Assembly: GCA_047495785.1 (NCBI GenBank)
Contig: JBLDXI010000004.1
Location: forward strand, 248,001-312,000
From: Lepidodermella squamata
Taxonomy: Eukaryota; Animalia; Gastrotricha
Direction: 5' to 3'
DNA length: 64,000 nucleotides
Positions 11,986 through 64,000 of this stretch are shown piece after piece (positions within the stretch are counted from its first letter, which is position 1; each line of letters opens with the position of its first letter). Under the pieces are notes generated by a model that was not told the origin of the DNA, ran no database searches, and saw only the letters and a list, made by a program, of their open reading frames with translations. The position numbers and the translations under genes were made by a program.

Positions 11986-12366
11986 CAAATAATAATTTTC
12001 AATTAATTTATAAAATTCTTCTGAACCATCAACTTTTGGGTTCCTTTATACCAATTTGTTGCCATTCATTGTTTAAATTTAATGGTTGGGAATCTTCATG
12101 ACTAAATCCATTTTGTTCAAGGTCTTTCACCCAGTTATAGTAGCTCAAAAAATGGGTCCAAAGGTCACTCGCAAAACATGCGTCAAGCTTGGGCCTGTTG
12201 TGTAGAATTTCTAGAAAATCAGGGTGAGCTCAAAAATTAAAGAAATAACACAGGTAGCAGTGGAATACACATATGAAGCCCTAGGATTTTTACCTGGAAT
12301 TTTCCGAGCTCACCTTGATTATCAACAAATTTTGGAATAATTGCCTGACAATCGAACGCGCCCTTA

Positions 12367-26000: not shown

Positions 26001-26786
26001 TGATGGCGAGTGAGCACTCTATCAGCTCTATGGAAATAGCTAATTACCTAGTGGGTGTAGCTACAAAAAACTAAAATGAATGAAAAAAGTGCCAAAGCTA
26101 TGTTTTCAAGAGTATTATTACCACGCGAAAGCCCCGATGAACTGGCTGACTACTCTAGCCTCTAGCCAAACAGACTCGTGACACTTTTAGTTTCAATGAA
26201 TTTGACCTGTTCCATTTTCATAGGGACGGTCTCAGAATGCCGATACAAGATTAACGAAATATTATTAATATATTTTTATACGTTTTCATAGACTTACACT
26301 CGATGCGTTGAAACGACTGACGGTTCAGTAACGTGCCGTTTGAGCTCATTCGGTTGTAACCCTACCACAGAAATGACTTATTCTGTCGAGTTCAGCGGCT
26401 TATCTCAGTGCCAAAATGCTCGGAAGCAAGTATTTTTGGTATCTAACCCGGGCGGTGGTACTATGGAGCTATGGCCGGCTGCGGATAAGTGCTTGCAGCA
26501 ACATGGCGTCCTGGCAACGATCAAAACAGCTGCCGATGCAGCCTCACTTGAAGGCATCCTATCGCATACCGATATTGCATGGGTCGGTCTTGTACCAGTT
26601 TCTGGGGCCCTTAAATGGTCGGACGGTACGGCATTTATTTTTGATCAATCTCTGTTTAAACCAGGTTATACCATATCCACTGACGCGTGTACGATCATTT
26701 CTTACTCTAATGGTACCTTTTTGATGAATCCCGTGGATTGTGGATATGATTACCTGTACGCAGTTTGCGAAACTTATGTTGAATAA
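20069..26786 (+). CDS. Secreted Cys-module/CTLD protein, copy 3 (434 aa; 6 modules + CTLD)
   Basis: Exons 20069-20227, 20285-20326, 20388-20474, 20526-20609, 20663-20743, 20804-20855, 20913-21073, 21135-21206, 21262-21333, 26292-26786 splice in frame. The link across the ~5-kb TE-filled last intron is inferred from phase and from paralog structure. Confidence 0.78.
23083..23285 (-). mobile_element. 3' end of an RTE-type LINE
   Basis: Minus strand reads LNWDKIEETACDRSNWRAFI..stop, then a short UTR and an (ATG)n microsatellite tail. Confidence 0.65.
24671..26032. mobile_element. P-superfamily-like foldback element
   Basis: Termini CATAGAGCTGATAGAGTG / CACTCTATCAGCTCTATG, 8-bp TSD GAAATAGC, inverted arms of about 400 nt or more. 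Confidence 0.85.
25357..25645. mobile_element. Small hAT-like MITE nested in the right arm of the P-like element
   Basis: CAGTGTTTTTTT..AAAAAAAACCCTG flanked by duplicated AAATCAG; absent from the mirror arm. Confidence 0.75.
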
Positions 26787-26990: not shown

Positions 26991-28577
26991 ATGCCTTATC
27001 ATCTCGAAACTATGCTGATGGCGCTTCTTATGCTGGCTTCGAGCAACGTGGCTTGGGGCAAGCAGCAGTTGAGCTGGGTTCGGTGCTTCTCGCAGCAAAG
27101 CAACAGATTCACCAGCTGCGTTCCAGCTTCGGATGGCTGCGATCCACTCAAAGAATTTCAGGTATCAGCTACTCAATTATTAATGTGAAAGCACCAACTA
27201 GATTGTTTCGTTGACAGTGGGGCTCAGTTTTCCGAACCACCGGCGTCTGTAACACTGGGGTATGTTTATTGTTTTTTGATCATAAGCCTTGCTTCAAAAG
27301 CAACCTGTCTTCTTTACAGAATGCTCGAATGTGCTACAAATACAAAGCTATGACCACCTTTTGCGTTCCTGGAAACATCGGCTGTAACAATCCTGGTGAT
27401 ATGAATGTATGCCCTAATACTCGCCACCAATACTCACTACTTCATCATAATAAAAATTGTCAACAAATGTTCTAAAATTCAGGATGATCAGCGAATTTTG
27501 AAATAAATATATTTTAATATAAATAAGTTTTTCAGACTTTCTGGTTCGACGATCAGACGCCGACTTTGAGCCTAAAGTACAACCTCAACGAATGTGAGAA
27601 GAAACGAGCTGTTTTCGATGTGAGAAATCCGACAACGCCTGGGCAATTAATAATTGGTGTCTTTCTCTTTCAGAAATTTCAATTCCGGCGATGCACTTCT
27701 AGCGGCACTATTAGAACCTGTGTTCCGGACCCGTACACTTGCCCCGAAAACTGGGTAAGTTTCTTGTTCTGTATTCAACGTATTTCGCTAATTTCTGTGA
27801 TTTTTCTAACACAAATTGGAAATTCTCAAAAATCAAAAAGTTGTTCTTATCTATGATATAGCAGTATCAGAGCATTTCTCCTAGTCTGAACGTTTCATCG
27901 GTGCATTTTGTAATCTCTCTGCTTGACCCACGCGCAGGTCACTGAGGCAACGCTGTTCCCGAATTTGACGTCTTGCATTAACAATTCCGTAATATCGACG
28001 TCTGTGAGTAACTTTGGGAAATATAATTTGAAATCCCACTGTGAAATTTCTGTTTCTGCAGTCCAGCTTTTACCGATGCGTCGACAAAAGTGGCGGGGCA
28101 GTCCATTGCGTACCCCAGTCGACTGGCTGCAATGCGGCAACTCAGCTACGAATCCCAGCTAATGCTGCCTACTTGGACGAGCACAGCTGCAAAAATGTGA
28201 CTAAGAAGTACATAGTCTTAGAGCTGATCGCTAATAAGACCATGGCCGTCTCGGGCTGCATCGAAGCCAATGCGACGCTGGCCACGGTTAGGTCAGACGA
28301 GGAGCTGGCAATAGCTAAACAAACTATGAGCGCGGCAAATGCTACTTATACGTGGATCAGTCTCATTCGGATAAACGGCGTATTCAGATGGGACGATGGT
28401 TCCGATTTCAATTACGTGGAATCGCAGTGGTCTCCTTCCGAAATTCCTCTAAATGGCTGCTTCATTTTAGAGTATATTACTCCGCAAATTGATGTAGTCA
28501 CAGTCGACGGCTACTACTATATTACAGTGCCTTGTGAGTCTTTTATGGACCATGTTTTGTGCGAAATGTTTGCGTAA
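26991..28577 (+). CDS. Secreted Cys-module/CTLD protein, copy 4 (348 aa; 4 modules + CTLD)
   Basis: Exons 26991-27161, 27218-27259, 27320-27406, 27536-27619, 27674-27754, 27938-28003, 28062-28577; all GT-AG, all phase 0, in frame. Confidence 0.88.
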
Positions 28578-30340
28578 CGCGGATGGGCTTTAAATCTGAG
28601 TTCACCAGTAGAGATGAGTTGTGTGATGAAGTAAAACAGCATCAGTAGCGATGACATAAAACAAACACAGCAAACTGAAGAACTTTCTGTATCTTTTGAT
28701 GTTTACCGGAGCCGAACTCCGATGCCTTATTTTTTATAATAATTGAGTTTCATTCAAGTTTCGAACCGATAATTATCGCGGAATTTCAGCCATTCTTCGA
28801 AGAAACAAAATTTGCCGCGAAATATTTGCGTAGCTGGTTCGAAATTTCCTTGTTGTATGAGTTGAGTCATCAGGCAGTAATCAGAAATGCCGTTCGGACT
28901 TGGTCCCTGCGTCGAGGATTCCATGGCGAAGATTTGCAGCTGAGGAAACAGAGCGCGGGTTCAAATCCCTCTGGCAAAACACTCATAAGCCATGTTTCTT
29001 CGAAGCTGAATGACCATTAGCCTTAATAGGTAATAGGCGATTCGCCGAATTCGACAGATTTTCTTATCATAAATGAGTCATTATCAGATGAAACGTAGAG
29101 AACTGAGTGAAAACAATCGATATCCGTCTTAATTTTTAGTCAACCGAAGGAAGAAGAATTCTTCGGTTTTCGAGTCCAGTTTGTCCCCAAATCTATCGTA
29201 TAAAGGATAAAAAAAGATCGTGTCTTACCGGTCCGGCTCGTTGTCTTCATTTAGGACTCTTTGGATCACTCATCTTCCATTTTTGGCAATTATTGCAGTG
29301 CCCAAATATGGAGTTGAAATATAAAAAAATTTGACATGCCCAGAACTTTTGTTCAAATTGATTTAATCTTGTTTACGCTTTCGATTTTTGGAGATTTTCA
29401 AAATTGTGACTGATGCAACAAATTGGTCGGACCACTCACAATTAAAGCTAAAACCACAAATATAGATTCTCTGGCAAATCGTTTACTACTGTCTCTTGAC
29501 TTATGATTGCTGGTAACGCAATTTATTGACGGTTCATTAATGTATTTTGTATTTTGTTCTTCTTAAAAAAAAAGAATTATGAAGGTGGCATGACCAGGAG
29601 CAGGGGTTTTGCTTTATTTCGAGTTTCTGAGTTAGAAGATGTCTTACTCAGATAACACTTGCTCAGGTTGAGTGAAAGCTTTGACTTGAAAATGATCCTG
29701 GTGTTACTGCTGCTGATATCCGGATCGAATTAGCTGCATGAATGTTTCTGCTGAGTTAACATCATCAACTCTTTGAATGATACGGCAGAGGATTGAAGAA
29801 TTGAGCGATTGACTGCGGACATGAATGATGAAGAAAAGCAACAGGTTGCCACCATGTCATGAGTTGATGAGTATTTAAGTGAGTTGATTTTAATTGAAAT
29901 GTTTGTCTGTATCTAGTCCAGTTGCTATACTGTATTCGTTTCGAATTAATCAATCGGTATCATCAAATGAAGTGGGGTTAATCATGATGAGAATTTACCA
30001 TCGAAGTTCATCAGAAGACGAGTGATTCCGGTCTGCTTCAAGGTAATTTATTGTTTCAAGTGATATCAAATTATCACTATTCCCAAGTTTATATGCTTCA
30101 AAGTTGTGCTACAAGATTGATAGGTTTATATAAAGAGTATATCCACAATCAGACCGAGTTTCAATATTTCACGCCATCTTAGTAAGAAACGAAGTCACGG
30201 AGGCATTGTCAATTGAAATGCGACACGATTGACTAGATTAGTTTCTGAAATTCCGCCATAATTGATGAGAAGTAGTTGCAGAAAATATTAGATGAAAAAA
30301 ATGATATTAATCGAGCGCGTCATCTAACATTTGCTACATA

Positions 30341-46436: not shown

Positions 46437-48731
46437 ATGGCTGAATTTATTCGCCTATTCATCATCTTGAGCCTAGCAGCATCGGCCTATCCACAAGAGT
46501 TCAAGCGATGCTTCTCACGTTTGAACGACGGCTTCACAGGTTGTAAGCAAAACTGCTCTTTTCTCGATGAAGTTCAGGTAAGCCAGTTTTCTACTTTGCA
46601 GATTTTATTTTGTAATTTCATTGAATTTAACAAAGCTCGGGCTGAAATTGAATTCATTGGCGAGTTGCAAATCTGGCGTGAGTTTTTACTCTATTTCAAA
46701 TTATTTGCAGTCAAATGCTGACAAGATGAATTTTAATTCAGTCTGCTCGAAGCTGTTTCAACTACAAAACGATCAGCATGCGATGCATCCCACGTAACCT
46801 TGGCTGTGATAAGAATGACGAAGTCATGGTCTGTGCCTGAGATTTCACATTGAATTTCATCACGTTATTCATCGTAACAGACGGCTGAATTTTTCGGGGG
46901 CGATTTTCGATCCGAGTACGACCTCTGCCGATCGAAAACTAGCAATTTCTTGGTTCGATTTATGAAGCATTTTCGTTACAATTGGATGCAGATGTATAAA
47001 CATATTTGTTCAGAATATTCAGGCGACGGTTTGTGACAAAAATGGCCAGCGAACGTGTATCCCGATCGATGGGCCCTGCCCAAACAGCGGGGTATGTTTC
47101 AAGAAGAGTATATCAAGGATTTTTTAATTTTTACCTTTTTCAACGCAGGCCGCAGTTGGGAGTTACAGATCAATGCAGCTCTGCATGTCGCAGGAGAAAA
47201 GTTGGTTTCAATCGTTCATCAGGGAATTTGGCAAATGTTTAAAAATGCTATGCTCGCATCCAAGTTTTTTTGAAATTTCTCGGTTTCGTAGAACAATCGT
47301 CATTTTGAACCTGAATTCTTCATTTCATAAAAAGTCGTTGATTTTACAGATGTCCGAAATTCTTCCGATTTCCTGCCCCACATCCGATGCTTTCTCCAAA
47401 GCGATCGGTCCTTCGTCGGCTGCCAATCAACGGCCTGCGATTCAGCCTCAATGACACAGGTAGATCCTCTTGCGATGATTGAAACACAGTGTTTTGTTCC
47501 CCATTTTCCTCCGTTAGTCCTACAGTAGCGGACCTCACATCGACAAATTCCACTGCAACGCAGGCGTTAGTTCTTTGCCATGTTAACTTACTGGCTATCA
47601 AAATTCGGAAATTTTACAGCCAGCTGCGTTATGCTCAGCCTCTGGTGCATTGGTTTGCCGAAACACATGCCCGCCCCCGATGACTCTGGTAGGCTGAGAT
47701 TTCATTTAATATCAATCAATGGGATTTTCGATATTGATACTTTTCTTATATTTAGAGAAAATCGAATTCCGAGATTTTTAATCAAATACTTATATTTGCG
47801 TTCAATTTGTTGAGATCCTTTCTCGAATTTTGGATTGCGCTCGTGATAATAAAATTGTCGTGACATTTTGGAGAAATTCGAAATTCCGAATATTTCCGAA
47901 TCTTCTAATTTAGCTTTAGTGAGATCATACTACTATGTTGATATAACTTTCGGGCCAAATAACTTGCGAGGTACATTTTTCAGGTAACAATTTTCAAGGC
48001 GAAATCAGACTTTGCTGGAAATTATGCTGACTGCTTGTTAACACAGGTATGTAATTTTTTCATCTGACTAGAGTTCAAGGAATTTGGATTCCTTGACCTC
48101 GTCCCTAGTTACAGCAGTCCCCACACCCAGGTTCTCTCAAATTGGTTGATTAATTCTGTACAGGAATTTCAAGATTTAAAATTTGAATTTGAATTAAAAT
48201 TAAAATTAAATTTTTTGTTTCCAGCAACCTGTCAACTATCACCGATGCGTTGCGAAGAGTGACAACTCTGTTCAATGCGTGGTCGAGTCGACTGGCTGCG
48301 ATGCGGCAACTCAACTTCGAATTCCGCCTAATGTGACATACGCGAACGAGAACGCCTGCAAAAATGTGACCAAGAAGTTCTTGTACATCAACAAGGCCCT
48401 CACTCGGAGCGAAGCAGCGGCCGAGTGCTTAGCTGCGAACGCCACTTTAGCAACGGCAAGGTCAAATGCCGAGTTTGACGATGTTAGGCAGTTTCTAAGA
48501 AGCTCGAATTTAGGCGACCCTTGGATGGGTCTCACCCGGCAAAACAGCAAACTGAAATGGGACGACGGCTCTTCATATACGTTCGAAACCAATCAGTGGT
48601 CAATATTTGAATCGTCGGAAGACAAGATCAAGTTTGATTGTATTGCGCTTGTGCTTTTCGCATTCGGTACACGTTACACTTCTGTTAATTGCGCTATTCC
48701 AAGTGCTGCTTTATGTGAGTTATTCGCGTGA
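46437..48731 (+). CDS. Secreted Cys-module/CTLD protein, copy 6 (422 aa; 6 modules + CTLD)
   Basis: Exons 46437-46577, 46636-46677, 46742-46828, 46881-46952, 47014-47091, 47149-47200, 47350-47459, 47518-47565, 47620-47688, 47984-48046, 48225-48731; all GT-AG and in frame. Confidence 0.85.
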
Positions 48732-48999
48732 TCCGTAGGTAGTTGCCTACTTTTTCTTCGAGATTTCATCGCTATTGCCTATTCGCGCTCGTTAACCCAA
48801 TAGTGTGTGACTGTGGGAAGATCAAGTAAAATGTTGATTGCTTTTTTGCCTGTGTGGATGAGAGGTCCAAGGCTGGCGGGTGTGAAGCTTTAAGGGACTT
48901 ATCTTCCAGAAATTGTGGTTTTTTCGGGGTTTCACCACTTTGGCCTGCCGAACTGTGGGTAAGATACCCATCATTCCCCCGTACTTTGTGCCAATCTGT

Positions 49000-49490
49000 G
49001 CAAATCGCTGAGCTGCGTGGATCGTGGAGCTGATGTTGATTCCAGGGAGGATTACAACGGCCAGACGGCGTTGATTTATGCGGCTGCGAAGGGTTACGTC
49101 GATGTAGTTGATCTGTTGCTGGATCATGACGCTGCCCACGAGGCCAAGGATAACGATGGCTATACAGCTTTGATGCATGCGGCTAGGAATTGGCGCGTCG
49201 AAGTGATTCGTCTGCTGCTGGATTGCAACGCTTCCATCGAGGCCAAGGCTAATTATGGCTGGACGGCATTGATGCTATCGGCTGCATATGGGTCAGTCGA
49301 CACTGTTCGGCTGTTGCTGGACAGAGGTGCTAGTAGGGATGTCAGAAATTCTGAAGGCAAGACAGCTCTCGATATTGCAACCTGTCGGGGAAAAACCGCC
49401 CAGGCCGATTTGCTGAGGTCGCGAGGAGCAACTCGAGCAAAGTCGTCTTGCCAACTCAGTGAATTAGTGCCCGATGAGAACGCAGATTAA
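49000..49490 (+). pseudogene. 5'-truncated duplicate of the ankyrin gene, lacking one repeat
   Basis: Closely similar to 44639-45229 including 3' flank; N-terminus missing. Confidence 0.8.
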
Positions 49491-50049
49491 TCAAATTCGC
49501 GATGCGCGATGTTTCCGCAAAAACCGATCTCAATGAAAAAGGCAGCAATCCGCAGGTACACCGCAAGTTGGACGCATTTCTTAAGCTCAGCCTAAAGGAA
49601 ATTTGTGTATTGCACACATTGAAAGCATTCCTAACTCATAACCCCACTCTCTTAAGGACAAACGCAGGCTGTTCAGATCTTGCTTGACACAGCTTTTCTC
49701 GACGTCGAAGACAGCTCACTAGGTTCAATCGGGTCGCGAAATAGGATCCTCAAGCTAGCAATTTTTTGTCTTATAACTTCCTAACTTCAACATCGTGGAA
49801 TTTTCACATAGACCATCCAGCAGCCTCGGGTCAGGTGTATGAATAAAGCTGTTCGGGTAACTAACCGTCTCAAACACAAATACCACCCATCCTCAAGTTT
49901 GCTTATCAGTGATTCAGTGCAGCAATTATAGTGCTAGGGTTAGGGTTAGGGTCGCAGTTAAGTGAGGGTTCAATCAATAAAAATTCTCATAATCGTTACA
50001 AGTAAGGGCGAGGTGAGCAGCCTCCCCGATGAGGTGAGCAGCAAGAGCG

Positions 50050-50400
50050 CGATTAAGAAATTCGTAATTTTGGCGGCCAATACCAACAAAGAAGACTGCA
50101 AGATTTGCGCTGCTATCACCGGAACAATTGCCACGATAAGGTCAACTGCAGAGCTGAATCAGGTGAGGCTCGAGCTCAACCAGACGAACCCGAGACCCAA
50201 CTCGGCTTGGACTGCTCTCACAATACAGAACAGCTCTTACAAGTGGGACGATGGTTCCGATTTCAGTTTCAATTTCGACGATTGAAATTTCAGCATAGCA
50301 GCTAACGGCTGTGTTACCCTTGCAGGAGGGCAAGATGGCCGAAATCCAAATGTCTTTTACTACCGTATTTGCTCGTACTTAAGGCAGTCTTATGTTCGTG
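50050..50400 (+). pseudogene. Orphan CTLD exon remnant
   Basis: KKFV..C..TIATIRS..WTAL..YKWDDGSDF; in-frame TGA at 50283-50285 where paralogs have Trp, and a later frameshift. Confidence 0.7.
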
Positions 50401-51045
50401 TACTTTTCGAAAAAATGACCCTCTTGAATCAAAATCTCCCGTCCGATCGGAGGGTTTCATAAAGTATTTCATAAATAGACAACTCGCGAGCGAACGCTGG
50501 CGGTTTTTCCGGTTTTTAGTTTGAAGATGGTCCAAAAATGCCTTGTTTCTTAGTGTGGATCTATGTTTGCCCTTTTGTCATTTTGAGGCCCATAGGACAC
50601 CAGTGTCCTACAGAACAATTGAAAGTTGGCTTAGTATTGGACACGGTTTGGGAAACGCTGGCCTGGTAACAACGTGCGAATCAGTTTATGCTGACGTTAG
50701 TGAGAAAATGAACGGATATATCTTGAAGTGTATAAAGCGGGCCAGTGTTTCAAGTTGAGTAACCAAAACTTTTGACGTATGAAAACAAAACAGTTTTTCG
50801 ACTATTTCTAGGTATGTTTGCGTATTTTCTGTTCCCGAATTTCGAAACCCCTGTGGTTTTCTGGCATGGACCTTCCGAGAAGGACCTAGAGGACCTAGAA
50901 TTCTTGGGGCATAAGAAAACTTGCAGAAGTTTCCTTTTCAAAAAAGCATGATGAAGAATACGATAACGTTGCTCATCTTTACTCCATATAACTCTTCTCT
51001 TGATTATTCACATTAATAGCTTCACGACAAATGATTGGCCAACTT

Positions 51046-54000
51046 TTAGCTTCCAGAAGAAAAGATTTCACACATAACCGTGTTAACGTTCATATCACAC
51101 GGCAGCGATACCAATTGCCATAGACCTGACGGGATGCCGTTATCAGTATCGATTCAACCCAACGCAATCGTAATTTGGTTGACAGGCTTCGGATGGCCGC
51201 TCACCCAAACGACATTAGAAGGCGAGTAAGCTGAACCGTCTGCCCACTTGTAGACGCCAGATCGCCGGTCGAGGCCCACCCAGCAGGCCTCTTCCGTGAT
51301 GAACTGAGAAACGCCGAATTCATTGTTTGTTGTGAACGACACAATGCGCAATCCAGCGGCTTCACATCTCGCTGCGGCAACTGTTATGTTTCTAACTGCG
51401 GAATCCAGCCGGATAAATACGAAGTACTTTTGAGCATTGAGGCAATTTTCTCTGTTGTCGTAGGTTATACGCGGAGGGTAAGGCGATTCGCCTTGGGCAC
51501 ATCCCGTCTTTTTCCCTCGGCAAGTCACGGCGCCATTCGAGGCTAAGCAGCGCAGGTGAGGAAGCTGTGAGAAAACAAGGCAAAAAATAAGAGCGCTTCT
51601 GTCTCTACAGCTGAATAATGCGCAATAAGAGCCGCCAAAGTGTACGAAGTAGAAACTTCAAGCTTGGAGATACACACAGTACCCCGTACCCCCTCCCTTT
51701 TTTCAAAAAGTTGATTTTCAATTTCGAATTTGTTCCATCAGTGCGATAAATATTAATATAATATCCGAAATAACTCACTAGTTCGATTGCACAGGAGTAG
51801 AAGTCATCGTAATTTCGGACAAAAGCTTGCCCGTCTCCCCCAACAGTTAATTGAGCTGCCTTGATTTCAAAGAAAATCATTCAGTTAGAGCATCTAGAAC
51901 ATCTAAAAAGAATCATCTTACGGCCTCCGGGCAGATTCTGCCTTTCGGCACGCAGAATAGCAATATCTCTCTCGAATCATATTCATATCCGCATTTATAG
52001 TATTGGCCCTGAGAATAAGATAAATAAATTGACACGGCTTCTCATAGGTATGTAGCAAACTTGGGTGGCGTTGATGCATGCCGCCATGCTATCGCTCAGG
52101 CTGGTCGTGGGTGATCCGACTGGTCCGAGCTGTTGTAAAACAGATATAAATCACAGCATTGAACTCAAGCGAATGACTCACATCGTACATCGCATCGGAT
52201 GAACATTGCTCCCGGCATCTTGCAGCTTCCGTGGGGCTCACGAAGCACATTTGAAGGGGCTATGAATTATCAGAATGGGAGCGCTATGATGACTTGTCGC
52301 TTGGTTTATTACTCACTCCTTTTTCACAATCGGACTTCGTCGGGTAAAGCGTCGCTCCAGTGGTCTAAATCGAGCATTTATTATTTCCATATTTGCAATA
52401 GGAATATCTTGCTCACCTCGCCTGAATTGCACTGAGTTGATGCCTTGACGCAGCCTGTAAACGAAGGCTTCGACCAGTCGAAACAGCGGCGATGCGGATA
52501 CATTTCAGGCGGAGCTGAAAAATTCATGAAAATTTTACGAAATTAAAAAAAATGATTAGCCCAAGCTTTACATTGTTGGATAGAGCAAAAATAAATTAAG
52601 ATCATAGTATTTTTCTCGGAATTTTTTGGCACAAAATGAAAACTTTTACCGTCTAGAAAGATCGGAAAAGTTACAATGGGCGGATAGGGAGATGAGTTAA
52701 TAAAATTGAGGATCGCGCGCTCACTTTTCAACGTTATGGTGTGAATTTATTTATTTTCGGAAGATCGCTAGTTTCCGATCTGTATAGAGTTGTCTATGGC
52801 TAAGCCTAACCACCATCTTACTCTTACTATGAATCTCTCGATTTTCAAGGTAAGGGGCGAGCTGAAAGAGCCGCATTTACCAGCTAAACAAATTTTTTTT
52901 AATTTTGCGAAAAGGGTCGCCCTAATGATTTGTGGGCTTAAACGCTCCAATCGTGTTACAAGCATTTAGAGCCAAAAGCTATCAAGACCTGAGAGCTGGA
53001 CCGATTCGGACAACTGGTATTGATATGTTTGGAAAATTCAAACCACCATAATTTTGATGTTGTTGGGAAAGATAACGCGTTTAATAACAACATCTGAAGG
53101 TACCTGGCCATCAGTCTTCAAGGTCGTTAACGTATGTCCAATTTTCAAGAAGAAGTCTAAATCGAACAAGGCCAACTATCGACCCGTGGGTATGGGTGAA
53201 CACGTAGGCAAAGTCCTGGAGAGAATACTTGCTGAACTAGTCGTAAAAACCGCGATAGCTAACGGAGTAATACCTCCAGAACAAGCCGCCTTCCTGTCAG
53301 GCTGCGGCACAACCGATACCCAACTGTCCGTGGTAATCGACATCATCTCCGCGATAAACGACAGAAAAGACTTCATCCTCCGCCAAACTGATGTTAGTGG
53401 GGCGTTCGACAGAGTGGACAGATCTCTTCTTCTCGACATTCTTTGGAAATCGGGCATACAGGGACAAGTTCACGCTATGATCCGATCATTCCTGACAGAC
53501 AGATACTTCCGTGTCTTGGTGGCCGGGGCGTCGTCGAGCCTTCGATCTGAAGATGCAGGTATCTGCCAAGGTAGTGCACTGGGGCCATCCCTCTGGCTCG
53601 TCTGGTATAGCGGAATCAGCCGATCGGTGTCCAAAATCGTCGACCAGCCCAATTACCACCCACCTGAGCCGTACACCTTCGCCGATGACTTTAACCTGGG
53701 AAGCACGAACCAATCAGATGTCGACATTGGAGAAGAGAAGGCTATGCAGTGGGCGAGAGCTCACAGAGTCTCGATGGACCCGAAGAAGAGGATAGATACA
53801 AAGTTCTCTTATCCACGTTTCAACTGTGGAAGAAGAAGACTGAATGAAGATAGCTCGCTTGAAAGCACCAACCCCTCGAAAGCGGAAACGGCCACTACAA
53901 CGCTACTGGGCCTAGTACTCGACACCGGTCTATCAATGGAGGAATGCATGACCAAGAAGATCGGTCAGGCCAACAGGGCAATCACGCAGCTCCTAAGACT

Positions 54001-55865
54001 GAGACCTTACTTATCGACACGCCAGCTCGAAAATGCTTACAAGACCTACGTTCTACCATACCTCGAATTCGCTATGGTACCATATACATTCGCGGCGTCG
54101 GCTAGCACCTTGGAGAAACTCGATGCAGTTCAAAACAGATTTGTTAAGATGACGGAAGCCAAATTGACACCGCTGGGCCATCGCAGATTCGTCGGGGTCA
54201 TGACGTATCTCTACAAAACTATGGTAGCAGGTCGGGGGACGAACCAAGTCCGCTCGAAATTTATAAAAATCCCGAAGCCGAATACAAGAACGAGGGCAGC
54301 GAGCGAGAAACACCACCATCAACTACAGCTTGCAAAATCGTCGAAGAACAGGGTCGACACGGCACCCTTTCGAAGGATGCAAGAGATCGTCAATCAATGG
54401 AACGACCTACCACGCGATACCTTTCCTGACACCGTCAACATCACAATATTTAAAGAAAAGATGAACGTCCTAGGGCGTCGGCTATAAGCCTACTAATGAT
54501 AACTGTGTGCGCCTGAATTTTTTCGTAAATAAAAAAAAAAAAAAAAACATCTAATATTAATAAAATAATTTCACAGCTCAGCTGGACAAACCAGTTAAAC
54601 ATTCGTTTAGAGTGCTGAATGTCATGCCAGCTACATTTCCATTTGAACACGACGCGTTACTCGAGGCCGGTTTACATTCGACAAGAGAAAACGTTGTAGA
54701 ATCGACGCATAAAATACGAGGTTGCTGGCAGAAATGATGGCTGGTTAGTTAGAGTAGATAAATTGTGAAGTCAACAAACCAGGCTGTCTAAGCAGTCTGC
54801 GTAGTTTGCGCCAAAGTCAGTCGAGGCTTTGAAGGTTGAAACCTAAAACACGAAAAAAATCAATTCAATCTAGAATGGATAATATCGAAAAAAATTGTTT
54901 GCAATTTTATCAAAATTTTAGCAGCACGCGATCGAAAAAAATTCATAAAAAAATCTACGGCAAATTCTATTACAAGGCTAATAAGAGAGTTATCGGAAAT
55001 TGAATACTCAAAAAATACCAACCAAAGTGAGAGGCGACGGGCAAGAATTTCGGCAAACGGGACCATTGGAAGAGGAACACAGCGCAGCTGGCTACGAATT
55101 TAAAAAAATCAGACATCTCGTTGGAAGTAATCTTTGAGTTTGCTCACGCCAGCAACACAGTAGGCCTTGTTCATGAATGAACCACTGTTATATTCCTATA
55201 AAATACAACAAAATCGAAATGCTGGGGGATTGAAGGGAACGAGGAACACACCTGTGTCAGGTTGGTGTCAGTGCAAGGCGTAGATCGACAGCCAACAAAA
55301 GCTCGATTGCTTTTGGCAAAGCACCGGTAATTAGTCACGAAATCGGCAGTGTTGCGAACGGCTAGAAAATGTCAATTAAATGTCAATACGTTCCAGATGC
55401 TATAGAGAACTAACCTCGGGTAGAATCCAAGCAAGCTTGCATCGTCGCAAAAGCATTGATCAAGGTCTGAAATTAGTGAAGCAGTTTTAGTAGCAATTTA
55501 ACGACTGGGCATGAATATTCGAGAATTTCAAGCAGGAATTAAAGAATTTTAAAATTCGACTAGCTCGATATCACAGAAAATTTCAAGAAAAAGAAACATT
55601 TGACATCAATAACAAAAAAAAACTTCGTATTCAAATCGGAAATTAAAAAAATTGAAATTTTTGAAAAATTTCAGAATTGATCAAAAATAATTCCGAAATT
55701 CTTCTATCATAAGTGGTTAAAAATTAAGAAAATTAAAAATTAAGAACGAAAAACTTACGCCGCCAGTTGGGCATGAGCCGCCTGGAATGCAGATTTGCTG
55801 GCCGTCGCTGCTAGTGAAATTGGCTCCAAATTGAGAAAAAAGATGACAGCCAGTAGAAACTTCAT
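51046..55865 (-). pseudogene. Cys-module/CTLD gene, copy 7 (~8 modules + CTLD), frameshifted, LINE in intron
   Basis: Exons 55865-55759, 55466-55415, 55361-55252, 55195-55148, 55091-55023, 54842-54780, 54724-54592, 52514-52417, 52364-52317, 52259-52182, 52129-52061, 52008-51922, 51859-51779, 51564-51046. Probable 1-nt loss in exon 1 and two deletions in the CTLD relative to copy 8. Confidence 0.8.
53096..54547 (+). mobile_element. 5'-truncated non-LTR retrotransposon (RT domain) with poly(A) tail
   Basis: NYRPVG, DVSGAFDRV, GICQGSALGP, FADD; poly(A) 54531-54547; TSD AACATCT at 53089-53095 and 54546-54552. Confidence 0.9.
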
Positions 55866-56807
55866 ATTATCGTATTTTAACTAGAACGAGTGCTTTTAGA
55901 AATAAATATTTTCCGTTGAAGAATTGTATTAAAATCTGGCCACGTTTATAGAGTCGATCGCGTGTCAAGTTCGCACATCAAAAAAACGTGTTTGCTTTTA
56001 AAATTTGTAAACATTGTGTTTGAGGTTTTTTGGCGCGAAAAAACGAAGATTTCCATTGGCTGATTCAAATAAAACCGCGATTTTCAAATTTCGAATTTTT
56101 TATTAAAAATAATCGTATTGGCTCGGCACGTGCGAAGACTCGGAAAAAAATATCTCAGTCATTCATGCAAAAAATATCAAATAAAAAATGCCTTTTTAGA
56201 GCAGAGAGATCAGTGAAAAAATTTGCAAGCAACTGGTAAGTATATGGTAAGTTAATCCAACAATATAGATTCACGTTATAAAACACATGTTTCAAAATAT
56301 CAACATCACGGAGGTATTTGCAATTATAACTGAAAGACAAGACGTAGTTTTTCCAGAATAATCCATAGTTACATGTAGATAGATAGAGGCAGCGATCAAA
56401 AGTTAAATACATGAACATCGCCTTCAGAAGTTTCAAGATCATAATTTCTCGAGAGATTTTATTGATATTTCACACAGCTATTATAAAATTCTCCATAAGC
56501 CAACTAAATGGTCGATTATATCCGTGGGGTGATAGATGATAAGTCCGTAGATTCGTTCAAGACTTGCGGCGAGATGCAAAAGAACGACAAGCGGCATTAA
56601 TTAATAATGGCAACGCTCATTTATTTATATTTAATTGATAACGAGAAAAGAGAGCAAAAAATTATAATATTTCCAATACATGAATCAACTGTTAATTTTA
56701 AGATAATAATAAGTTTGGCTTACTGTGAGAGATGTCTTCACGCATTCGCATATAATTTATAGCCAAAGTTATTTATCAGACGAAAATAAATCAGGCGAAA
56801 AAATTAA

Positions 56808-57692
56808 TCAATTTACGTATGTAAGAATCAGTTCTTTCAATTTTTTCGCTGCGCCAGTAAGCGGCCGTGTTCCAAACACGTCGGTCCAATTCTTGTGAGC
56901 TTCGATTATTATGTTGGCCAGCTCGGGCTCGGATGTATTTTTCGCGAGAAATCGATCGTAGTGTTCGTCAATGAGATCAGCGAAGGCTTCGAGTTCGCAC
57001 TTTAAATATTCATTAATGTAAATATTATTTTATGAAATATGTTAAATGTTAACGCCAACCTTCAAGTAGAGATGCCGACGTGGGCCAGTCTGGCGAGCAG
57101 GAGCAGCATTAATAAGCATAGCCATTTTCTCGCGAATCGGGATGCGACGCGGGGTATCGATCAGTACGCTTGTCCGTCGAAAGTTCCAGCCTGGCAGCAA
57201 AGTTTTATCGGGCGCCACAGTGGCATCAGGATTCACGTCGGGATCAGGACTCGCCGACCGCGAGTTGTTGGCTGAAGAATGAACAGATGAGCGAGCTGAA
57301 GAGTGTGCTGAAGAATTAACCGACGAACGCGCAGAGGAACGAGATGAACGATCGGACCGCGCACTTGCTAGGCTGCTGCGCCGCGATGAAGGCCTCGAGT
57401 TCAACGTTAGCCTTGCGACTACCTCGTTTAGGTCATTTTCTTCGGGTTCGGCGATGGTCAGTTTGAAATGAGGAGGCTCGTCAGGACTGAGCCGAAACGC
57501 CCGGGCCAACGCCTGTTCGTCCACGACCGAAACCCAGAAGCTTCCGTCAAAGTACTTAATCGCTAGTGGAAACGACCCTGTGAGTTTCCATTTCCATTGT
57601 CGAAGAATTTCTGCTTGCAAACTTGCCACGGTACGTTCTTCGATGGAGAAGACCCGAACGTCGTCTTTCCAGGACATCCTTATTTCCGACAT
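56808..57692 (-). CDS. PB1-domain-like protein with Ser/Arg-rich linker
   Basis: N-terminus IRMSWKDDVRVFSI..LAIKYFDGSFWVSVVDEQALARAF fits the PB1 pattern. Probable exons 57692-57060 and 56999-~56808; 3' end uncertain. Confidence 0.65.
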
Positions 57693-58283
57693 TTAAGAGT
57701 TAATATATCTAAAATATAAAAAATATGAAATAATGCAATAAATTAAAATAATTAGTTCCAAGATGGTTCAGCGATAAATGTATCTAAATTGAATGCGTAA
57801 AACACCGCGGGATGGCTTGGTATCGCGCCTAGAATAGGAATCTTAATGCATCCACAGAGGGTGAAAAAACGTCATCTCACGCTGGGAAAAATTTGGCGTA
57901 GAACGGATGGTCGTCAATTTTGAAAATAGTCGAGCATTTTTCAAAAGTGCCGATCAGATTAGTAATATCTTGAAAAGGGATCATAATTCGTTTGCCAAGT
58001 GAGCCGAATCTAAATAACTATTATCAAGCAAGCAAGATGAATTACGTAAAGCAAAATTACTTTTTAAAAACTGCCGCAGCGGTAGCTTTCAAACAAGGTA
58101 GGAAAATAGTACCCTTTCGAGGCAAACAATTTTTGTGACGACGATTTCCGCGCCTTGTCGACAGGTAGTGCGCTAGTAAAACGTGTAGATCGTCTTTCAT
58201 TTCAAGTTCAGTAAAAATTCTAGTTACTGACGTTCATATTTATAAAAATAGTGTTAAATTATCGAAATTCCAAGTATTGTATC

Positions 58284-60463
58284 ATGGGCGACATCCCAGC
58301 GGTAGGAGTATTGCTGGGAAACGATTTAGCTGGGAGACCCGCGATTATTAGAATAGCCCCAGTCAATAAAACTATTGCTAAACGAAAAGCTATCCGCAAG
58401 CCTTATCGAGAGCTGTCGAGGCAGCAAAAAGTTATTCGCGTTCAACAAGCGTTGGAGGAGCATATGGATAACTTCAAGAATTCTTCTGCATTCCGGCATT
58501 ATGTGGGGAATGAAAAAATAGAGAGATTGGAAATGAAAGCGAAAGTCGTAAATCTGCCCGAGGTCTCCTCGCGTAGACCAGATGGATGTGTGAAAGCATC
58601 GATAGAACGAGCAGAAACTTGCGAAAAGTAAAACTTTCATTAAAAGAAAAAGACGTTAATGTGTCAATTGACCATATTCTTTTCAATAGAGTAATGGAGC
58701 AACAAGCATCGAAGCTTGTACCTACGCGTTCGGCCTATCCGATTGCCAAGCTTTTAGGCCGAGCGAGAATATCTGGTCCTGGATTAATAAGAGCTCGCAG
58801 AGTCATGTCCGGTTATTTGGAAATCGATGGCATAGAAGGTTTGCTGATTGGTTAGTCAATAATTTTAAATATGCTTCATTCGCTTTTAAGACGAAAACGA
58901 GAAGGAAAGAGGCGTAAGAATCAAACTGGATCAGTTTTTGGAAAAATGGATAGCATCTGGTCACTTGAAATCTCGTATGCTGAACGAAGTACGCTTGCAA
59001 ATCGATGGGACACCTCGACGAACCTCCGTTGGGGATTGTCTGGTACAAGCGACGTTATGCTTTGTGACAAAGAAAAAGAAAACTGGTTTGAACGAAGAAT
59101 TTCAGCTCTTAATCTACGAAGGCAAGGAGTCTTACGAATCAGTCAGGAAATACTTGCAACCGGTGGTTGACGAATTGGTGAAATGGGCCACGGAAGGAGT
59201 GCGGGACAAAAATAATATTCGATACCGCATCAAAATTATTTTGATATGCGATTACCCTATGCTTGTTTACATTCAAGCGTGTGGGCATCACGGCTCGCAC
59301 CATGCATGCATTTTTTGTACCAAGGATTTTCGACATGAAGAAGCTGTTGGTGAGGAAAGGAAATTTGATGAAATAGAAGACCAGTGGCACCAGATGAACG
59401 AACGCGAACGCGAGGAAGCCGGCTGGCACAGATTATTTCTACCCATGTTCCTATTACCCAAAGAGGTATTTCAAGTTGCACCTTGCGTCTTGCATCTTGA
59501 ATGTTGCATCACGAATTCTGGGTTGGAAGCGGTAAGAAATGCTGCGGTTTTAGTAATGATTGAATACTTCCTTAACAGATTTTAACAAAATTGAAAGCTG
59601 AAAATCTCACTTCTGCATATGACAACATCAGTAGAATAATTCAATCAAGTTCTAAAAAACTGACATTGCAAGCTTCAACTACTTGCCAGCGAAAAGTGAA
59701 TATTACACGAGCAAATCACACCGCGACAACTAACGTAAGCTAACTTGATTTCTATTTAACGACATGATATAATGAAAAACAGTCACTCAAATGGCTGGCG
59801 ATGACAGGCTCGCTGTTTCAATATCTCGGACCTAATTGGCATCTCGAGTTTGTGAAAGGAAGATACGGTCGAGATATGGCTTTCTACAAGCAATGGCTAC
59901 TGGATAACCACGGCGTGAGGGTCAGGTCTCATTGGACGCTGGAGCAAATTCAGCTGAAAGCTATTGAAAGAGGCCTTGAGCGCGATGTAAGCAATAAGAA
60001 AAAATGCAGCAATTAAACTAAATATTTTCTTAACCAGAACATCGAAAAAATGCAGCAATATATACTGCAGTGCGACGATTTCTTGCAAACATCAAAAAGA
60101 ATTTTCGAAAGAATTGATTGCATGGATCTTGGCGGTGATCCCGAGGAAGACTTCGAGCGATTCGAAGAAGCATTCAAGGGAATTGTTGGAAGGCTGACTA
60201 CTTATGCGCACAGTAAGGACACTTGAGCTAAAACCTTAAAATAACTACAATTGTCGCTATTTCAAGTTACAGCGCGACACGTTCTACCGTTGCTAAGAAT
60301 GGGCATTAACCTGAGATTACTTTCAGCCGAGTCAATCGAAATCAGGCAAAAAATTATCAAGAAAATGCTAAGCATGACTTGCGCAGCTTTGCCTTCATCT
60401 ATTCCGCGGCAACTAATGAAAGTGTTCATGATAAGGTTGTCGCAGTACTGGCGTGCTATTTAA
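58284..60463 (+). CDS. RAG1-core/Transib-like DDE transposase (621 aa, 7 exons)
   Basis: Exons 58284-58627, 58690-58838, 58891-59531, 59579-59734, 59783-59986, 60038-60212, 60267-60463 total 1866 nt with no internal stop. Motifs RKPYRELSRQQK, QIDGT, GKESYE, D-x18-CIFC, PCVLH, YAH-x4-H-x19-E. Confidence 0.82.
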
Positions 60464-61097
60464 TCTCAAAACCGAAGATTCTAAACCAATGTGATCATTA
60501 ACAATTTGTGATTTGTGATGAGCTGTAAGCTGTGATGAAATGGTTCACGGGAAAGTGAACGAAGAGATTAAGAATAAAATGTGACCGATTTACAACTACT
60601 TGGCGACAACTATACGTCCGTTGGAAAAGTTACACATATTTGTGGTAATGAAAGACGACGAATAGACAAGTGACAATGACAAGAAAGTTGCTAGTAAGCC
60701 AAAATCTGGTATCAGCAGCAGAAAACACAGCGGGATTCTGAATAGACCGCCGGCGGGATATTTTGACCGAAAATAGTTGATAATCAACATTATTTATTTA
60801 TTTTGGATTTAAAACTTAAAGACATTTTTTGTGATTTACATATTATTTGAATTTGCCGCTGATTTTCTTTCGGCCAATCAGAAGAATGGAAAAATTTCTA
60901 CTTACAACCTAAAACATAATGAAGATTGTCGGTGGTAAATCACGTAAGTGTAACGTGAACTCTGCCGTGATGTCGTAAGTCGAAGGCGAGAGCACGTGCG
61001 CTCGTTGTCCCATCAAAAACAATTCTGGCATCATCAAAAAATGTTTCATTTCCAAAATCTTATTTTTCTGAAAAATAAATAATTCTTCGTGGCTAAT

Positions 61098-61440
61098 ATA
61101 AAACTATACGTATTTATTTTATTCTCCGCTCTGCTAACTCTGGCTCTTAGCCAAACCTTTTCTGTGTTTAACAATAAATTTCGGCGTTGCCGTCGCGAAT
61201 CAAGGGGCTGCATTGTAACCCAATTCCCGGTAACAACAAAGCTGTAATTCATCATAAAAAATTAGAAATTTAATTTGTTTAGACGGGGCCGAGTCTGAAC
61301 ACATCTGAACAGTGCATTCGAGAGGTGAGTGATCATTCAAATCATTTCGGTGATTTATTTACCAGCAAGCCTCGCTTTGCTGTAAACCCAAAACGCTCAA
61401 TGCACTTTGCCGGAATGCACTGGCACTAAAAAATTTTTAA
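61098..61440 (+). pseudogene. Remnant of a divergent Cys-module gene
   Basis: ATA in place of ATG, signal-peptide-like KLYVFILFSALLTLALSQ, RRC..GC exon (61098-61229), 42-nt one-Cys exon (61283-61324), decayed third exon from 61366. Confidence 0.55.
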
Positions 61441-61594
61441 TGTGGAGTTTATTTTATTTTATTTTATTTTATTAGTACTTCAGTTGTGCCTGTTTAAAAC
61501 GGCTCAAGAAAACTTTGCTCATCATCCGTCCACTTTACTCACAAACTCGTCTAGATCATTCATATTAGCTTCACCGTAAATGATTCACCAACTT

Positions 61595-63954
61595 TCAGTT
61601 TCCGAAATCAAAGCTTTCACACATAACCGGGAAAACGTTCATATCACACGGCAGCGATACCAAGGCAAATGGACCTGACGGGATGCCGTTATCATCGTAG
61701 TATCGATTCATCCCAGCACAATCGTAATTTGTGTTGACGGGCTTCGGATGGCCGCTCACCCAATCGACAGTAGAAGGCGAGTAAGCTGAACCGTCTGACC
61801 ACTTGTAGACGCCTGATCGCCGGTCGAGGCCCACCCAGCAGGCCTCTTGGGGTGTGTTCTGACCATCGACGAATTCTGCCCTTGTTGTGAACGAGGCCAG
61901 GCGAAATCCAGAGGCTGCACATCTCGCTGCGGCAACTGTTATGTTTCTAACTGTGGAATCCAGCCGGTTAATAACGAAGTACTTGCGAGCTCTGAGGCAT
62001 TTGGCTTTGTTGTCGTAGGTTATACGCGGAGGGAAAGGCGATTCGCCTTGGGCACATCCCACCTTTTTACCCCGGCAAGTCACGGCGCCATCCGAGGCGG
62101 TGCAACGCAGATGAGGAAGCTGCGGATAAAAAAAAACAAAAATTGATCGCTTCTTTTCATTCCGCTGATATAAATCACTTTTTTCAAAATGAAGCAGTAC
62201 AGCAAAATGAAGTAGGATCCCAGAAACTAACTGGGGCTTATATTAAAACCCGAATTGGTGTAGCAAAGCTACCCATTTCCCTTGGTACTTCATAAGTGAA
62301 ACGAAACGACAGGCAATCATTATTCCAAATTCGATTGTCAATTTTTGAATTTTGAATTCCATCAGTGCGATACACATTCAAAAATATCGAAAAATAACTC
62401 ACTATGTCAGCAGCACACGTGTAGAAGTCGTCGTAACTTTGGATAAAAGCTTTGCCGTCTTCCCCGAAAGAAAATGGACTTCTCTTGATTTCAAAGAAAC
62501 GCATTCAGTTAGGAGCAAACGTATGACGAGAATCCTCTTACGCCTTCTGGGCAGTAACTGTTTTTCGGCACGCAGAGTAGCAAGTTGCCGGCGTCATTTT
62601 CATCATCAACGCATTGATGGTATCGGCCCTAAGAAAAAAGGTTAAACATGACACGACAGCTTTTTCACTCATAATACAAACTTGAGTGGCGTTGAGGCAC
62701 AGCATCAAGCTATCGCTCAGGCTGGTCGTGCGTGTTCCGAACGGTTGGAGCTGTTTGGGAAACAGAAACGATTATTCGCATTGAAATTTGATGAATGACT
62801 CACGTCGTATTGGCCATCGCCGGTTGGACATTCCTCCCGGCATGATCCACCCTCAATAGTGTCCAAGCACATTCGAATAGGCTATGAATTATCAACGTAA
62901 AAGAAGTCTTGAAACTCGATTTGGTACTCACTCCTTTTCCGCAATCGTCTTTTGTCGGGTAAATCGTCGCCCCAGCGGTCTGAATCGAATTTTCATTATG
63001 GCAATCGGTAATAAAGATTGTGTACTAACCTCGCCTGAATTGCACTGCGTTGGTGCTTTCACGCAGCCTGTAAATGAAGGCTTGGACCAGTCGAAACACC
63101 GGATATGCGGATACATTTCGGGCGGGGCTAGAAATAATACATTTCGATATTTTAAAAAGTGAATTTAAATTTATTTAATTTTTTTCCGCTATCAATTCGA
63201 AATTCCGCTGGAATCATTGAGGAAATGCCGGATGACCAACGGCGTTCCGATAACTTCCGATAATAATTTCCAATGGAAAAATGACAATAGGTGAAGTGCC
63301 AACAGTGTGCAAAGTAGGATCCGGGTGCTGACGCGTTTTCCAATTTTTTCTAGGACCCAGCCAAAGGGTCCCCTGTGGTTTTGTCAACCTTCCTCTGATT
63401 GCAGTCCCCGTACTTCCCCGTACTTCGCAGTCTAGCCTTGAACCTGAACCCTAACCAAACCCAAACGCCGACCCTAAATCCGAACCCTTACTACTAACCT
63501 CAACCTCCAACCCGCGTTCCCAACGTTTTCAGCAATTATTTTGGGCAAGAAACTAGTTATGGTAATTTCGCTGCTAAAGACTGGGTTGAACATGGGTAAC
63601 GTTGTTCAAATCCAATAACTAAAAAATATCGGGGAATACAGGCCTTCAGGGGCCGAAGGCGGACCTATCCTCGCCAAGCTCAGCAAAGTTGGACATACCG
63701 TTTAAGCAATCGTTGAGAGTGCTGAATGTCGCTCCAGCTACATTTCCATTCGAACACGACGCGTTACTCGAAGCCGGTTTACATTCGACAAGAGAAAAAG
63801 TTGTGGAATCGACGCATAAAACGTGAGGTTGCTGATAGAAACGATGATTCAACTCGCAAGAATAGTAAAATCGTGGAGTTAATTAACAAACCAGGCTTGT
63901 TAAACAGTCGGCGTAGTTTCCGCCAAAATCAGTCGAAGCTCTGAAGGTTGAAAC
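61595..63954 (-). CDS. Cys-module/CTLD protein, copy 8 (5' part lies beyond the window)
   Basis: Exons 63954-63892, 63831-63699, 63127-63030, 62979-62932, 62881-62804, 62750-62682, 62628-62542, 62483-62403, 62119-61595; in frame, internal exon sizes identical to copy 7. Confidence 0.85.
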
Positions 63955-64000
63955 CTAGAAGATGAAAAACATGGATTCAATCTAGATTGGATGAGATAGA

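Follow-up and report, generated by a model that had tools for sequence, protein, structure and literature searches.

Does the RAG1-like transposase gene in this region of the Lepidodermella squamata genome belong to a transposon with two genes and, if so, what would the second gene contribute? The sequence-only reading of the window, as we call the whole stretch of 64,000 nucleotides that was analysed, had seen the transposase head to head with a partner gene encoding a PB1-like N-terminus, a Ser/Arg-rich linker and a probably helical C-terminal exon, both genes inside the same inverted termini, and had proposed a RAG-like unit in which the partner, as a cofactor other than RAG2, may scaffold or regulate the transposase. 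DNA transposons with two genes are rare, and every one of them has taught something about the import, targeting or restraint of a transposase (the Harbinger Myb-like protein, En/Spm TnpA and RAG2). The explanation that we favour, with a probability of about 0.6, is that of a two-gene transposon of the CACTA/Mirage/Chapaev (CMC)-Transib clade whose partner protein acts as an accessory transposition factor.

A young, multi-copy transposon with two genes

Spanning 4.9 kb, the element is a cut-and-paste DNA transposon with two genes, young and present in multiple copies (Table 1). Unitigs of X1, a run of the source organism, break at 56011/56012 and at 60921/60922, and in one X1 contig 56009 is followed by 60922, which leaves out 4912 nt, with 2 letters that fit either side of the joint. 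The shorter side of this empty-site contig measures only 28 nt and its right flank is ~9% different; the contig may represent a paralogous site instead of an allele. A piece of another copy, X3, begins at 56011 with a flank unlike that of the window. The read depth is 251-446 inside the element versus about 85-120 in the flanks (~3-5x), and it is roughly equal, at a multi-copy level, over the two genes. Since the X1 unitigs show 6 differences from the window copy in 4.9 kb, we call the element young. The search of the window by tblastn with all the exons returned zero paralogues.

The two 16-nt termini match at 14 of 16 positions, which was equalled by one of 2000 random position pairs. They were not reported by a generic inverted-repeat finder and surfaced only after the reads had set the boundaries. 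Their sequence is CATTRTGTTTKAGGTT; the ends are CA...TG, the terminal heptamers are CATTGTG and CATTATG, and a subterminal similarity, TTTCCATT..CTGATT, lies about 35-55 nt further inward from the left terminus. The placement of both genes inside the same inverted termini is thus borne out by termini that coincide with the unitig breaks and with the empty-site joint, and so is the two-gene architecture, through the single pair of termini, the near-equal multi-copy depth and the joint absence of the genes at the empty site. The last three observations argue that the partner is neither a single-copy host gene, which the depth and the empty site rule out, nor, on present evidence, a separate insertion.

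Table 1. Positions, within the window, of the transposon, its termini and the parts of its two genes
Feature	Positions	Strand	Details	Basis
Whole transposon, both genes inside	56012..60921	.	4910 bp	X1 unitig breaks, empty-site contig, depth
Left target-site duplication	56010..56011	.	AA, 2 bp	Sequence and empty-site joint
Right target-site duplication	60922..60923	.	AA, 2 bp	Sequence and empty-site joint
Left terminal inverted repeat	56012..56027	+	CATTGTGTTTGAGGTT, 16 nt	End-to-end alignment
Right terminal inverted repeat	60906..60921	-	Reverse complement CATTATGTTTTAGGTT, 16 nt	End-to-end alignment
Partner exon 1	57060..57692	-	211 codons: N-terminal domain, Ser/Arg-rich linker, basic stretch	ORF; X2 spliced contigs
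Partner residues 1-95	57408..57692	-	Putative beta-grasp/PB1-like domain	ESM-feature neighbours (0.84), low-confidence model
Partner residues 96-160	57213..57407	-	Ser/Arg-rich low-complexity linker	24 S and 9 R of 65
Partner intron	57000..57059	-	60 nt, GT..AG, in frame	Gene model; absent from X2 contigs
Partner exon 2	56808..56999	-	63 codons and stop, acidic tail	Gene model; covered by X2 and X3 contigs
Divergent intergenic region	57693..58283	.	591 nt, presumed bidirectional promoter	Between the two gene models
Transposase gene	58284..60463	+	623 codons; 7 exons: 58284-58627, 58690-58850, 58891-59531, 59579-59734, 59783-59986, 60038-60212, 60273-60463	All introns GT..AG, 40-62 nt
Candidate first catalytic Asp	59004..59006	+	In QIDGTP	Inferred, motif context
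Candidate second catalytic Asp	59250..59252	+	In ICDYP, 82 residues past the first	Within the Transposase_21-aligned stretch
CxxC (CIFC)	59307..59318	+	19 residues past the second Asp	Motif reading
SAESIE with candidate catalytic Glu	60323..60340	+	HxxH 17 residues earlier, spanning the exon 6/7 junction	Inferred

An expressed partner gene and its possible role

The minus-strand ORF found in the window (57692-57042, 216 aa) underlies a gene model of two exons, 57692-57060 and 56999-56808, with 274 codons and a stop. Contigs of a second run, X2, carry the exact splice junction (loose end 57002 for the end of exon 1, 57060 for the start of exon 2) and lack the 60-nt intron, from which it follows that the partner is transcribed and spliced. 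In 100 shuffles of the window, ATG-ORFs of at least 216 codons never occurred (the longest had 193), and the shuffles and the spliced RNA together rule out a chance ORF. The ORF first described as intact is therefore upheld as a spliced gene with a GT..AG intron. Its distance of 592 nt from the transposase start (ATGs at 57692 and 58284, on opposite strands) and its Ser/Arg-rich linker, in which Ser and Arg make up 51% of residues 96-160, also stand. The spacer between the two genes contains a 19-nt palindrome at 57908-57956; a bacterial-type promoter scan of this region was discarded as irrelevant to a eukaryote. In the X3 copy, an in-frame deletion of 9 nt at 57337 falls within the Ser/Arg-rich linker. 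The coding pieces of X3 are about 1.5-2.7% different from the window; the clearly non-coding pieces show 9 differences in 178 nt (56011-56188) and 9 in 108 nt (60507-60614), and two other short non-coding pieces are just about 1-4% different.

In the model that we favour, the partner would be an accessory transposition factor comparable to the Myb-like protein of PIF/Harbinger or to En/Spm TnpA. Its N-terminal domain would provide self-association or docking to the transposase, its RS-like and basic parts would serve for nuclear entry and perhaps for the binding of the conserved subterminal motifs, and the partner would help to bring the transposase to the paired ends. A role as scaffold or regulator of the transposase is plausible.

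The expression data bear on another view of the partner, as a regulator or inhibitor instead of a cofactor. Such a protein would act on the transposase by titration or sequestration, or on host RNA processing or silencing through its RS-like region, and would thereby limit damage or evade defence. RS-like linkers are typical of RNA-processing proteins, the partner shows no sign of DNA binding, and X2 contains its transcript and no transposase contig. The partner has, however, no homology to any known regulator, and the missing transposase transcript means little, since the depth of X2 is low (2-16) and the data are contigs; in X2, expression is seen for the partner alone and not for the pair. 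We consider a regulator or inhibitor unlikely.

The partner, as far as these searches reach, is an orphan modular protein. Protein, family and structure searches, including 5.8 billion clustered proteins and 1.84 billion representatives, returned no relatives, and word-index searches gave no match, whether the query was exon 1 or only its first 95 residues. An exhaustive HMMER search of the 1.84 billion representatives produced five matches, all of which were discarded as spurious because they are long proteins matched just in several short stretches; three of them (P0001, P0002 and P0005) are, by Pfam, repetitive Ig-like, SprB or POM152 proteins. Scans of the JGI metagenomes matched neither the partner nor exon 3 of the transposase, Pfam gave no match at E<=10 on the partner, Myb/SANT included, even on exon 2, which had been read as probably helical, and the PDB sequence search with the partner yielded no relevant chain.

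Such an orphan, for which homology implies no function, could also be passenger cargo, a host gene or gene fragment captured by transduplication and without any role in transposition, and DNA transposons are known to capture host domains, including PB1 in plant MULEs (PMC4948706). Against this stand the lack of a host parent or relative among the 5.8 billion clustered proteins or the 1.84 billion representatives, the intron, intact frame, expression and fixed head-to-head position of the gene, and the conservation of its frame across the indel of the diverged X3 copy; we regard cargo as distinctly improbable.

The accessory factor that we favour would act through its N-terminal domain, which had been described as PB1-like, a description that no family or fold search confirms. 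The PB1 fold is a ubiquitin-like beta-grasp with the order beta-beta-alpha-beta-beta-alpha-beta, in which type A domains carry the acidic OPCA motif (pattern YxDEDGDxVxIxSDEDL) and type B domains a basic residue in strand 1. The Pfam PB1 model (PF00564) did not match at E<=10, either with the whole of exon 1 or with residues 1-95 alone, and the PDB sequence searches with the partner returned no PB1 chains. By contrast, the ten best ESM-feature neighbours of the N-terminus are all PB1 domains, at a score (0.84) that lies under the level where such matches are reliable. Single-sequence AlphaFold models reached a pLDDT of 37 and 50 in two runs, with unreliable packing; one of these low-confidence models contains strands at 4-9, 12-17, 43-48 and 51-56 and helices at 22-33 and 59-65, in the order beta-beta-alpha-beta-beta-alpha, and the other adds a fifth strand at 75-81. 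With the better model, the fold searches were uninformative, and their best hits were not PB1, in Foldseek against the PDB (E 0.25), in the wide VIA-align search (Z 3.3) or in the Atlas shape search (TM 0.48). By eye only, residues 46-63 (KYFDGSFWVSVVDEQAL) resemble the OPCA pattern without its central acidic cluster, and Arg5 occupies the place of the PB1 strand-1 Lys. The element order, the neighbours and the partial motif thus speak for the PB1-like description, and the sequence models and structures do not; the first ~90 residues probably adopt a ubiquitin-like beta-grasp, which is possibly of PB1 type. The stronger proposal, in which a highly diverged PB1-type oligomerising adaptor would be required for the transposition of a RAG1-clade transposase, as a RAG2-independent solution to the assembly and regulation of the paired-end complex, seems doubtful to us. 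Were PB1 modules of this kind recruited repeatedly by unrelated transposon superfamilies in the genome, this would suggest a shared scaffold, of host or transposon origin, for the assembly of transpososomes.

A transposase probably of the CMC-Transib clade

The exons of the transposase can be read as D-82-D-19-CxxC ... HxxH-17-E, that is, as a DDE triad in which CxxC follows the second Asp and two His precede the Glu, as expected for Transib and RAG1. This arrangement does not discriminate, since it is common to CMC enzymes too. The best HMM match is that of Transposase_21 (PF02992) to exon 3, with an E-value of 8e-5 and 22.4 bits versus a cut-off of 28.6, over positions 76-161 of the 213 of the profile; DUF1280 follows with E 0.067. 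The ESM clusters near the transposase comprise DUF1280 (0.97), Transposase_21 (0.94) and RAG1 RNase H/ZnC2/ZnH2 (0.96). The RAG1 Pfam models gave no match at E<=1-10 with the exons searched one by one, a procedure that a weak full-length signal could escape; the PDB chains of RAG1, Transib and ProtoRAG gave none at E<=10, the Transib models none, and the Harbinger transposase model none on any exon of either gene. A word-index search with exon 3 was also without a match, its length window shutting out full-length relatives.

These observations bear on a further possibility, a true RAG-like system in which a PB1 protein would stand in functionally for RAG2 beside a recombinase of the Transib/RAG1 lineage. 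The D-19-CxxC spacing and the HxxH ahead of the candidate Glu are as in RAG1, the ESM neighbours include the RAG1 clusters, and the termini are CA...TG. On the other hand, the matches to RAG1, Transib and ProtoRAG are lacking, the leading profile is Transposase_21, the duplication is 2 bp and not 5 bp, the heptamers differ from CACAATG, and the same motifs occur across the entire CMC-Transib clade (bioRxiv 10.64898/2026.08.26.747230). The mismatch in duplication and heptamer is not decisive, since according to the same 2026 preprint both traits vary within Transib. We hold a true RAG-like system to be very unlikely.

As judged from its motifs and profile match, the transposase probably falls within the CACTA/Mirage/Chapaev-Transib clade, to which RAG1 also traces back, and is no nearer to RAG1 than an ordinary enzyme of this type. 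What remains of the RAG1-like label is therefore membership of the broad CMC/Transib/RAG1 clade. The picture of the origin of RAG is unchanged, since nothing links this transposase specifically to RAG1. The interest of the element lies elsewhere: it seems to be intact, it is polymorphic and very young, its transposase probably stems from the clade that produced RAG1, and no search turned up a relative of the expressed second gene. It thereby offers a tractable system for the role of an accessory protein in a CMC/Transib-type transposase.

Comparison with other transposons

Plant En/Spm also encodes a second protein, TnpA. In the present element, the second gene is separate, divergent and orphan; it is not an alternative splice product and it has no sequence kinship to TnpA. 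With CMC transposons in general the element shares a DDE transposase whose catalytic residues are flanked by zinc motifs, CxxC and HxxH, and its termini are CA...TG; its sole HMM match, Transposase_21, lies under the Pfam cut-off, and its termini begin with CAT and not, as in CACTA, with CACTA. The 2-bp AA duplication fits the 2-4 bp of CMC (bioRxiv 10.64898/2026.08.26.747230).

Transib, ProtoRAG and RAG1-RAG2 belong with it to a broad clade of zinc-stapled RNase H-fold DDE enzymes, and the ESM-feature neighbours of the transposase include RAG1 core domains, without sequence match to models or structures. ProtoRAG and RAG are two-gene units as well, but their genes are convergent and those described here are head to head; Transib and RAG have a 5-bp duplication and a CACAATG heptamer, whereas here the duplication is 2 bp and CACAATG is absent. 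The partner has none of the kelch or other features of RAG2.

Plant MULE transposases carry PB1 domains, in the PB1-MULEs and in MUSTANG-B (MUGB) (PMC4948706), and the likeness is that of a DNA transposon with a PB1 domain, putative in our case. In those plant elements a Mutator-like transposase and PB1 form one fusion protein, in which standard domain models find PB1; here, it would lie in a separate gene of an animal-type, small-intron genome, and the Pfam PB1 model misses it. PIF/Harbinger elements also carry two separate genes, and in Harbinger both nuclear import of the transposase and binding to the ends depend on the second protein (PMC9392472). That transposase is of a superfamily unrelated to the one described here, and Pfam found no Myb/SANT trihelix in the partner, so that the analogy is functional only. 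Beside these systems, the association of an orphan helper gene with a transposase is a variant of the two-gene DNA transposon.

Two divergent genes in a single mobile unit

The partner, a two-exon gene on the minus strand, and the transposase, a seven-exon gene on the plus strand, form with their shared ends one mobile unit, the element, which is multi-copy, young and polymorphic and holds nothing further that is recognisable. Its ends were set by the public sequencing run X1, in which 95% of the sampled words are present and which is probably from the source organism. Near-identical X1 unitigs span the whole stretch and break exactly at 56011/56012 and 60921/60922, and an X1 contig runs from 56009 straight into 60922, so that 4912 nt are missing and two letters fit either side, a joint that looks like the empty target site ...GTA-AA-GATTG.... 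AA stands on both flanks as a 2-bp duplication. The left terminus (CATTGTGTTTGAGGTT) and the reverse complement of the right one (CATTATGTTTTAGGTT) match at 14/16 positions, a score equalled by only 1/2000 random position pairs, and the similarity continues inward of both (TTTCCATT ... CTGATT). The read-set ends and the terminal match thus uphold the sequence-only reading, which had placed both genes inside one pair of inverted termini.

X1 depth is several-fold higher within the element (251-446) than in the flanks (85 on the left, 68 and 52 on the right), and is alike over the partner (327-446) and the transposase (325-431); no paralogue of the element was found elsewhere within the window. 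Over 4.9 kb, the window copy and the X1 unitigs differ at just six positions, which indicates that the copies are very young. In X3, a run whose organism label differs from that of X1, the left end, both partner exons and the transposase are represented by pieces of 90-99% identity; the left-end piece begins at 56011 and its flank is unrelated to that of the window, so the family occupies another site there. The X3 coding pieces diverge from the window copy by about 1.5-2.7% and the clearly non-coding ones by more (9/178 at 56011-56188, 9/108 at 60507-60614), two further short non-coding pieces showing only about 1-4%. The partner reading frame is kept in this diverged copy, whose sole partner indel removes 9 nt, in frame, from the Ser-rich linker.

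Two other X1 joints were seen: one, from 56080 to 59647, skips 3566 nt and may represent an internally deleted, non-autonomous derivative with neither the partner nor the first half of the transposase; the other, an odd one, runs from 59652 to 57333 through an intervening AATCA.

On either side of the element lies a diverged tandem unit of a C-type-lectin array. The reverse-transcriptase ORF falls within a ~1.5-kb segment that lectin unit A has in excess of unit B, the repeat spacing falling from ~10613 to ~9107, and so probably represents a piece of a retroelement that inserted into the array.

Features of the element and of the window
Feature	Position	Size	Remarks
Element	56012-60921	4910 bp	ends set by read breaks
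Partner ORF from ATG (-)	57692-57042	216 aa	
Partner, N-terminal part	residues 1-95		mixed-charge domain
Partner, linker	residues 96-160		51% Ser+Arg
Partner, end of exon 1	residues 161-211		basic, 11 K+R vs 3 D+E
Partner exon 2 (-)	56999-56808	63 residues	acidic
Transposase ORFs (+)	58251-60463	1872 nt coding	seven exons; 623 codons + stop
Inverted repeat, mid 591-nt spacer between the genes	57908-57956	19 nt	84% complementary, 11-nt loop; possible shared regulatory site
Reverse-transcriptase ORF (+)	53054-54487	477 aa	RVT_1, E 7.9e-17
C-type lectin exon (-)	61595-62083		Lectin_C, E 1.2e-6
Similar lectin segments	50977-51600 and 61533-62154		
Similar lectin segments	54574-54888 and 63681-64000		
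Lectin repeat families	~1500-3100, 6000-7700, 20000-20650, 27000-28600, 48200-51600		diverged tandem array, much of the window
Long inverted repeats	24657-26046; 11448-11949; 10573-13777	401 nt; 192 nt; nested 84-135 nt pairs	87% and 96% for the first two; suggest other foldback or MITE-like elements

Gene models and partner transcription

In the partner, codon 211 is followed at once by a GT donor (57059), and splicing to the AG acceptor at position 57000 carries the frame on into exon 2, giving 274 codons and a stop; an ATG-ORF of at least 216 codons arose in 0/100 window shuffles. The scattered plus-strand ORFs of the transposase link up through introns of 40-62 nt, all GT..AG. The two ATGs lie head to head, 592 nt apart, and both the coordinates and the intact frame agree with what had been read from the sequence, the span first reported (56808-58284) running from the partner stop codon to the transposase ATG.

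Contigs of X2, a run that is RNA by guess only, cover 56363-57470 at 99% identity and low depth, and two of them carry the predicted exon-exon junction exactly (the 17 letters after 57002 are the exon 1 end, the 10 before 57060 the exon 2 start). The partner is therefore transcribed and spliced, barring a processed DNA copy. X2 gave no contigs over 57564-61100, hence no transposase transcript was seen, which at this low contig depth proves little.

Beyond the partner stop codon the X2 contigs run on for ~445 nt (56363-56807), implying either an extended 3' UTR or another transcript within the element's left arm. Immediately outside the left end, at 55250-55890, they are far deeper (up to 94), with many variant letters and joints that look spliced (55360 to 55415, 55462 to 55760), and this looks like transcribed multi-copy sequence.

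Class of the transposase

Both proteins were searched exon by exon, which lowered the sensitivity for both. The only transposase family match is in exon 3, to Transposase_21 (CACTA tnp2; E 8e-5, 22.4 bits against a cut-off of 28.6 bits), beside a faint match to DUF1280; no exon matched RAG1 models or the structures of RAG1, Transib or ProtoRAG. The motifs read D(QIDGTP)-82-D(ICDYP)-19-CxxC and, across the exon 6/7 junction, HxxH-17-E(SAESIE). CMC (CACTA/Mirage/Chapaev), Transib and RAG1 all share this zinc-stapled DDE layout (bioRxiv 10.64898/2026.08.26.747230), which explains why the ESM-feature neighbours mix DUF1280, RAG1-core and Transposase_21 clusters. The 2-bp duplication is within the 2-4 bp range of CMC and unlike the canonical 5 bp of Transib; it is not decisive, since duplication length and termini both vary inside Transib (2026 preprint, bioRxiv 10.64898/2026.08.26.747230). 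We assign the transposase to the CMC-Transib clade, leaning towards CMC; the label "RAG1-like" holds only at the level of that clade, through the shared layout, and not as a match to RAG1 or Transib. That the two genes form a true RAG-like pair is very improbable.

The partner protein and its proposed role

The Ser/Arg-rich linker proposed for the partner is present. Its PB1-like N-terminus stands at roughly even odds as a PB1-type beta-grasp: the ten best ESM-feature neighbours are all PB1 clusters, though the score of 0.84 is, by the tool's own calibration, no more than a lead. Pfam gave no match at E<=10 with exon 1, the N-terminus or exon 2. The PDB sequence search returned no PB1 or other relevant match, and neither the word search of 5.8 billion clusters nor the JGI metagenome scan gave any; the only hits of an exhaustive HMMER search of 1.84 billion representatives were repetitive Ig-like proteins aligned over short stretches. 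Single-sequence AlphaFold models reached pLDDT 37 (exon 1) and 50 (residues 1-91), at which packing is untrustworthy; the predicted order (strands 4-9 and 12-17, helix 22-33, strands 43-48 and 51-56, helix 59-65, plus strand 75-81 in the longer exon 1 run) fits a beta-grasp. With the better model as query, no match rose above noise in Foldseek against the PDB, in VIA-align wide or in the Atlas shape search. Residues 46-63 (KYFDGSFWVSVVDEQAL), compared by eye, look like the PB1 OPCA region, without its acidic core.

We infer that the partner is probably an accessory transposition factor. The second protein of Harbinger brings its transposase into the nucleus and binds the transposon ends (PMC9392472), and by analogy transposition of the element may need both proteins. 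The N-terminal domain of the partner would serve self-association or docking, its RS-like and basic regions would direct nuclear targeting and perhaps nucleic-acid binding, and the conserved subterminal motifs would be candidate binding sites. A partner that instead regulates or inhibits is rather unlikely, and one that is mere cargo is less likely still.

Two-gene cut-and-paste elements are already known, among them Harbinger, En/Spm, MuDR and ProtoRAG. Our literature search found no separate, divergently transcribed orphan gene for an animal-type element of the CMC/Transib clade. Transposon PB1 domains have been described in plants, in MULEs and in the domesticated MUGB genes, where they are fused to the transposase and recognised by standard models (PMC4948706).
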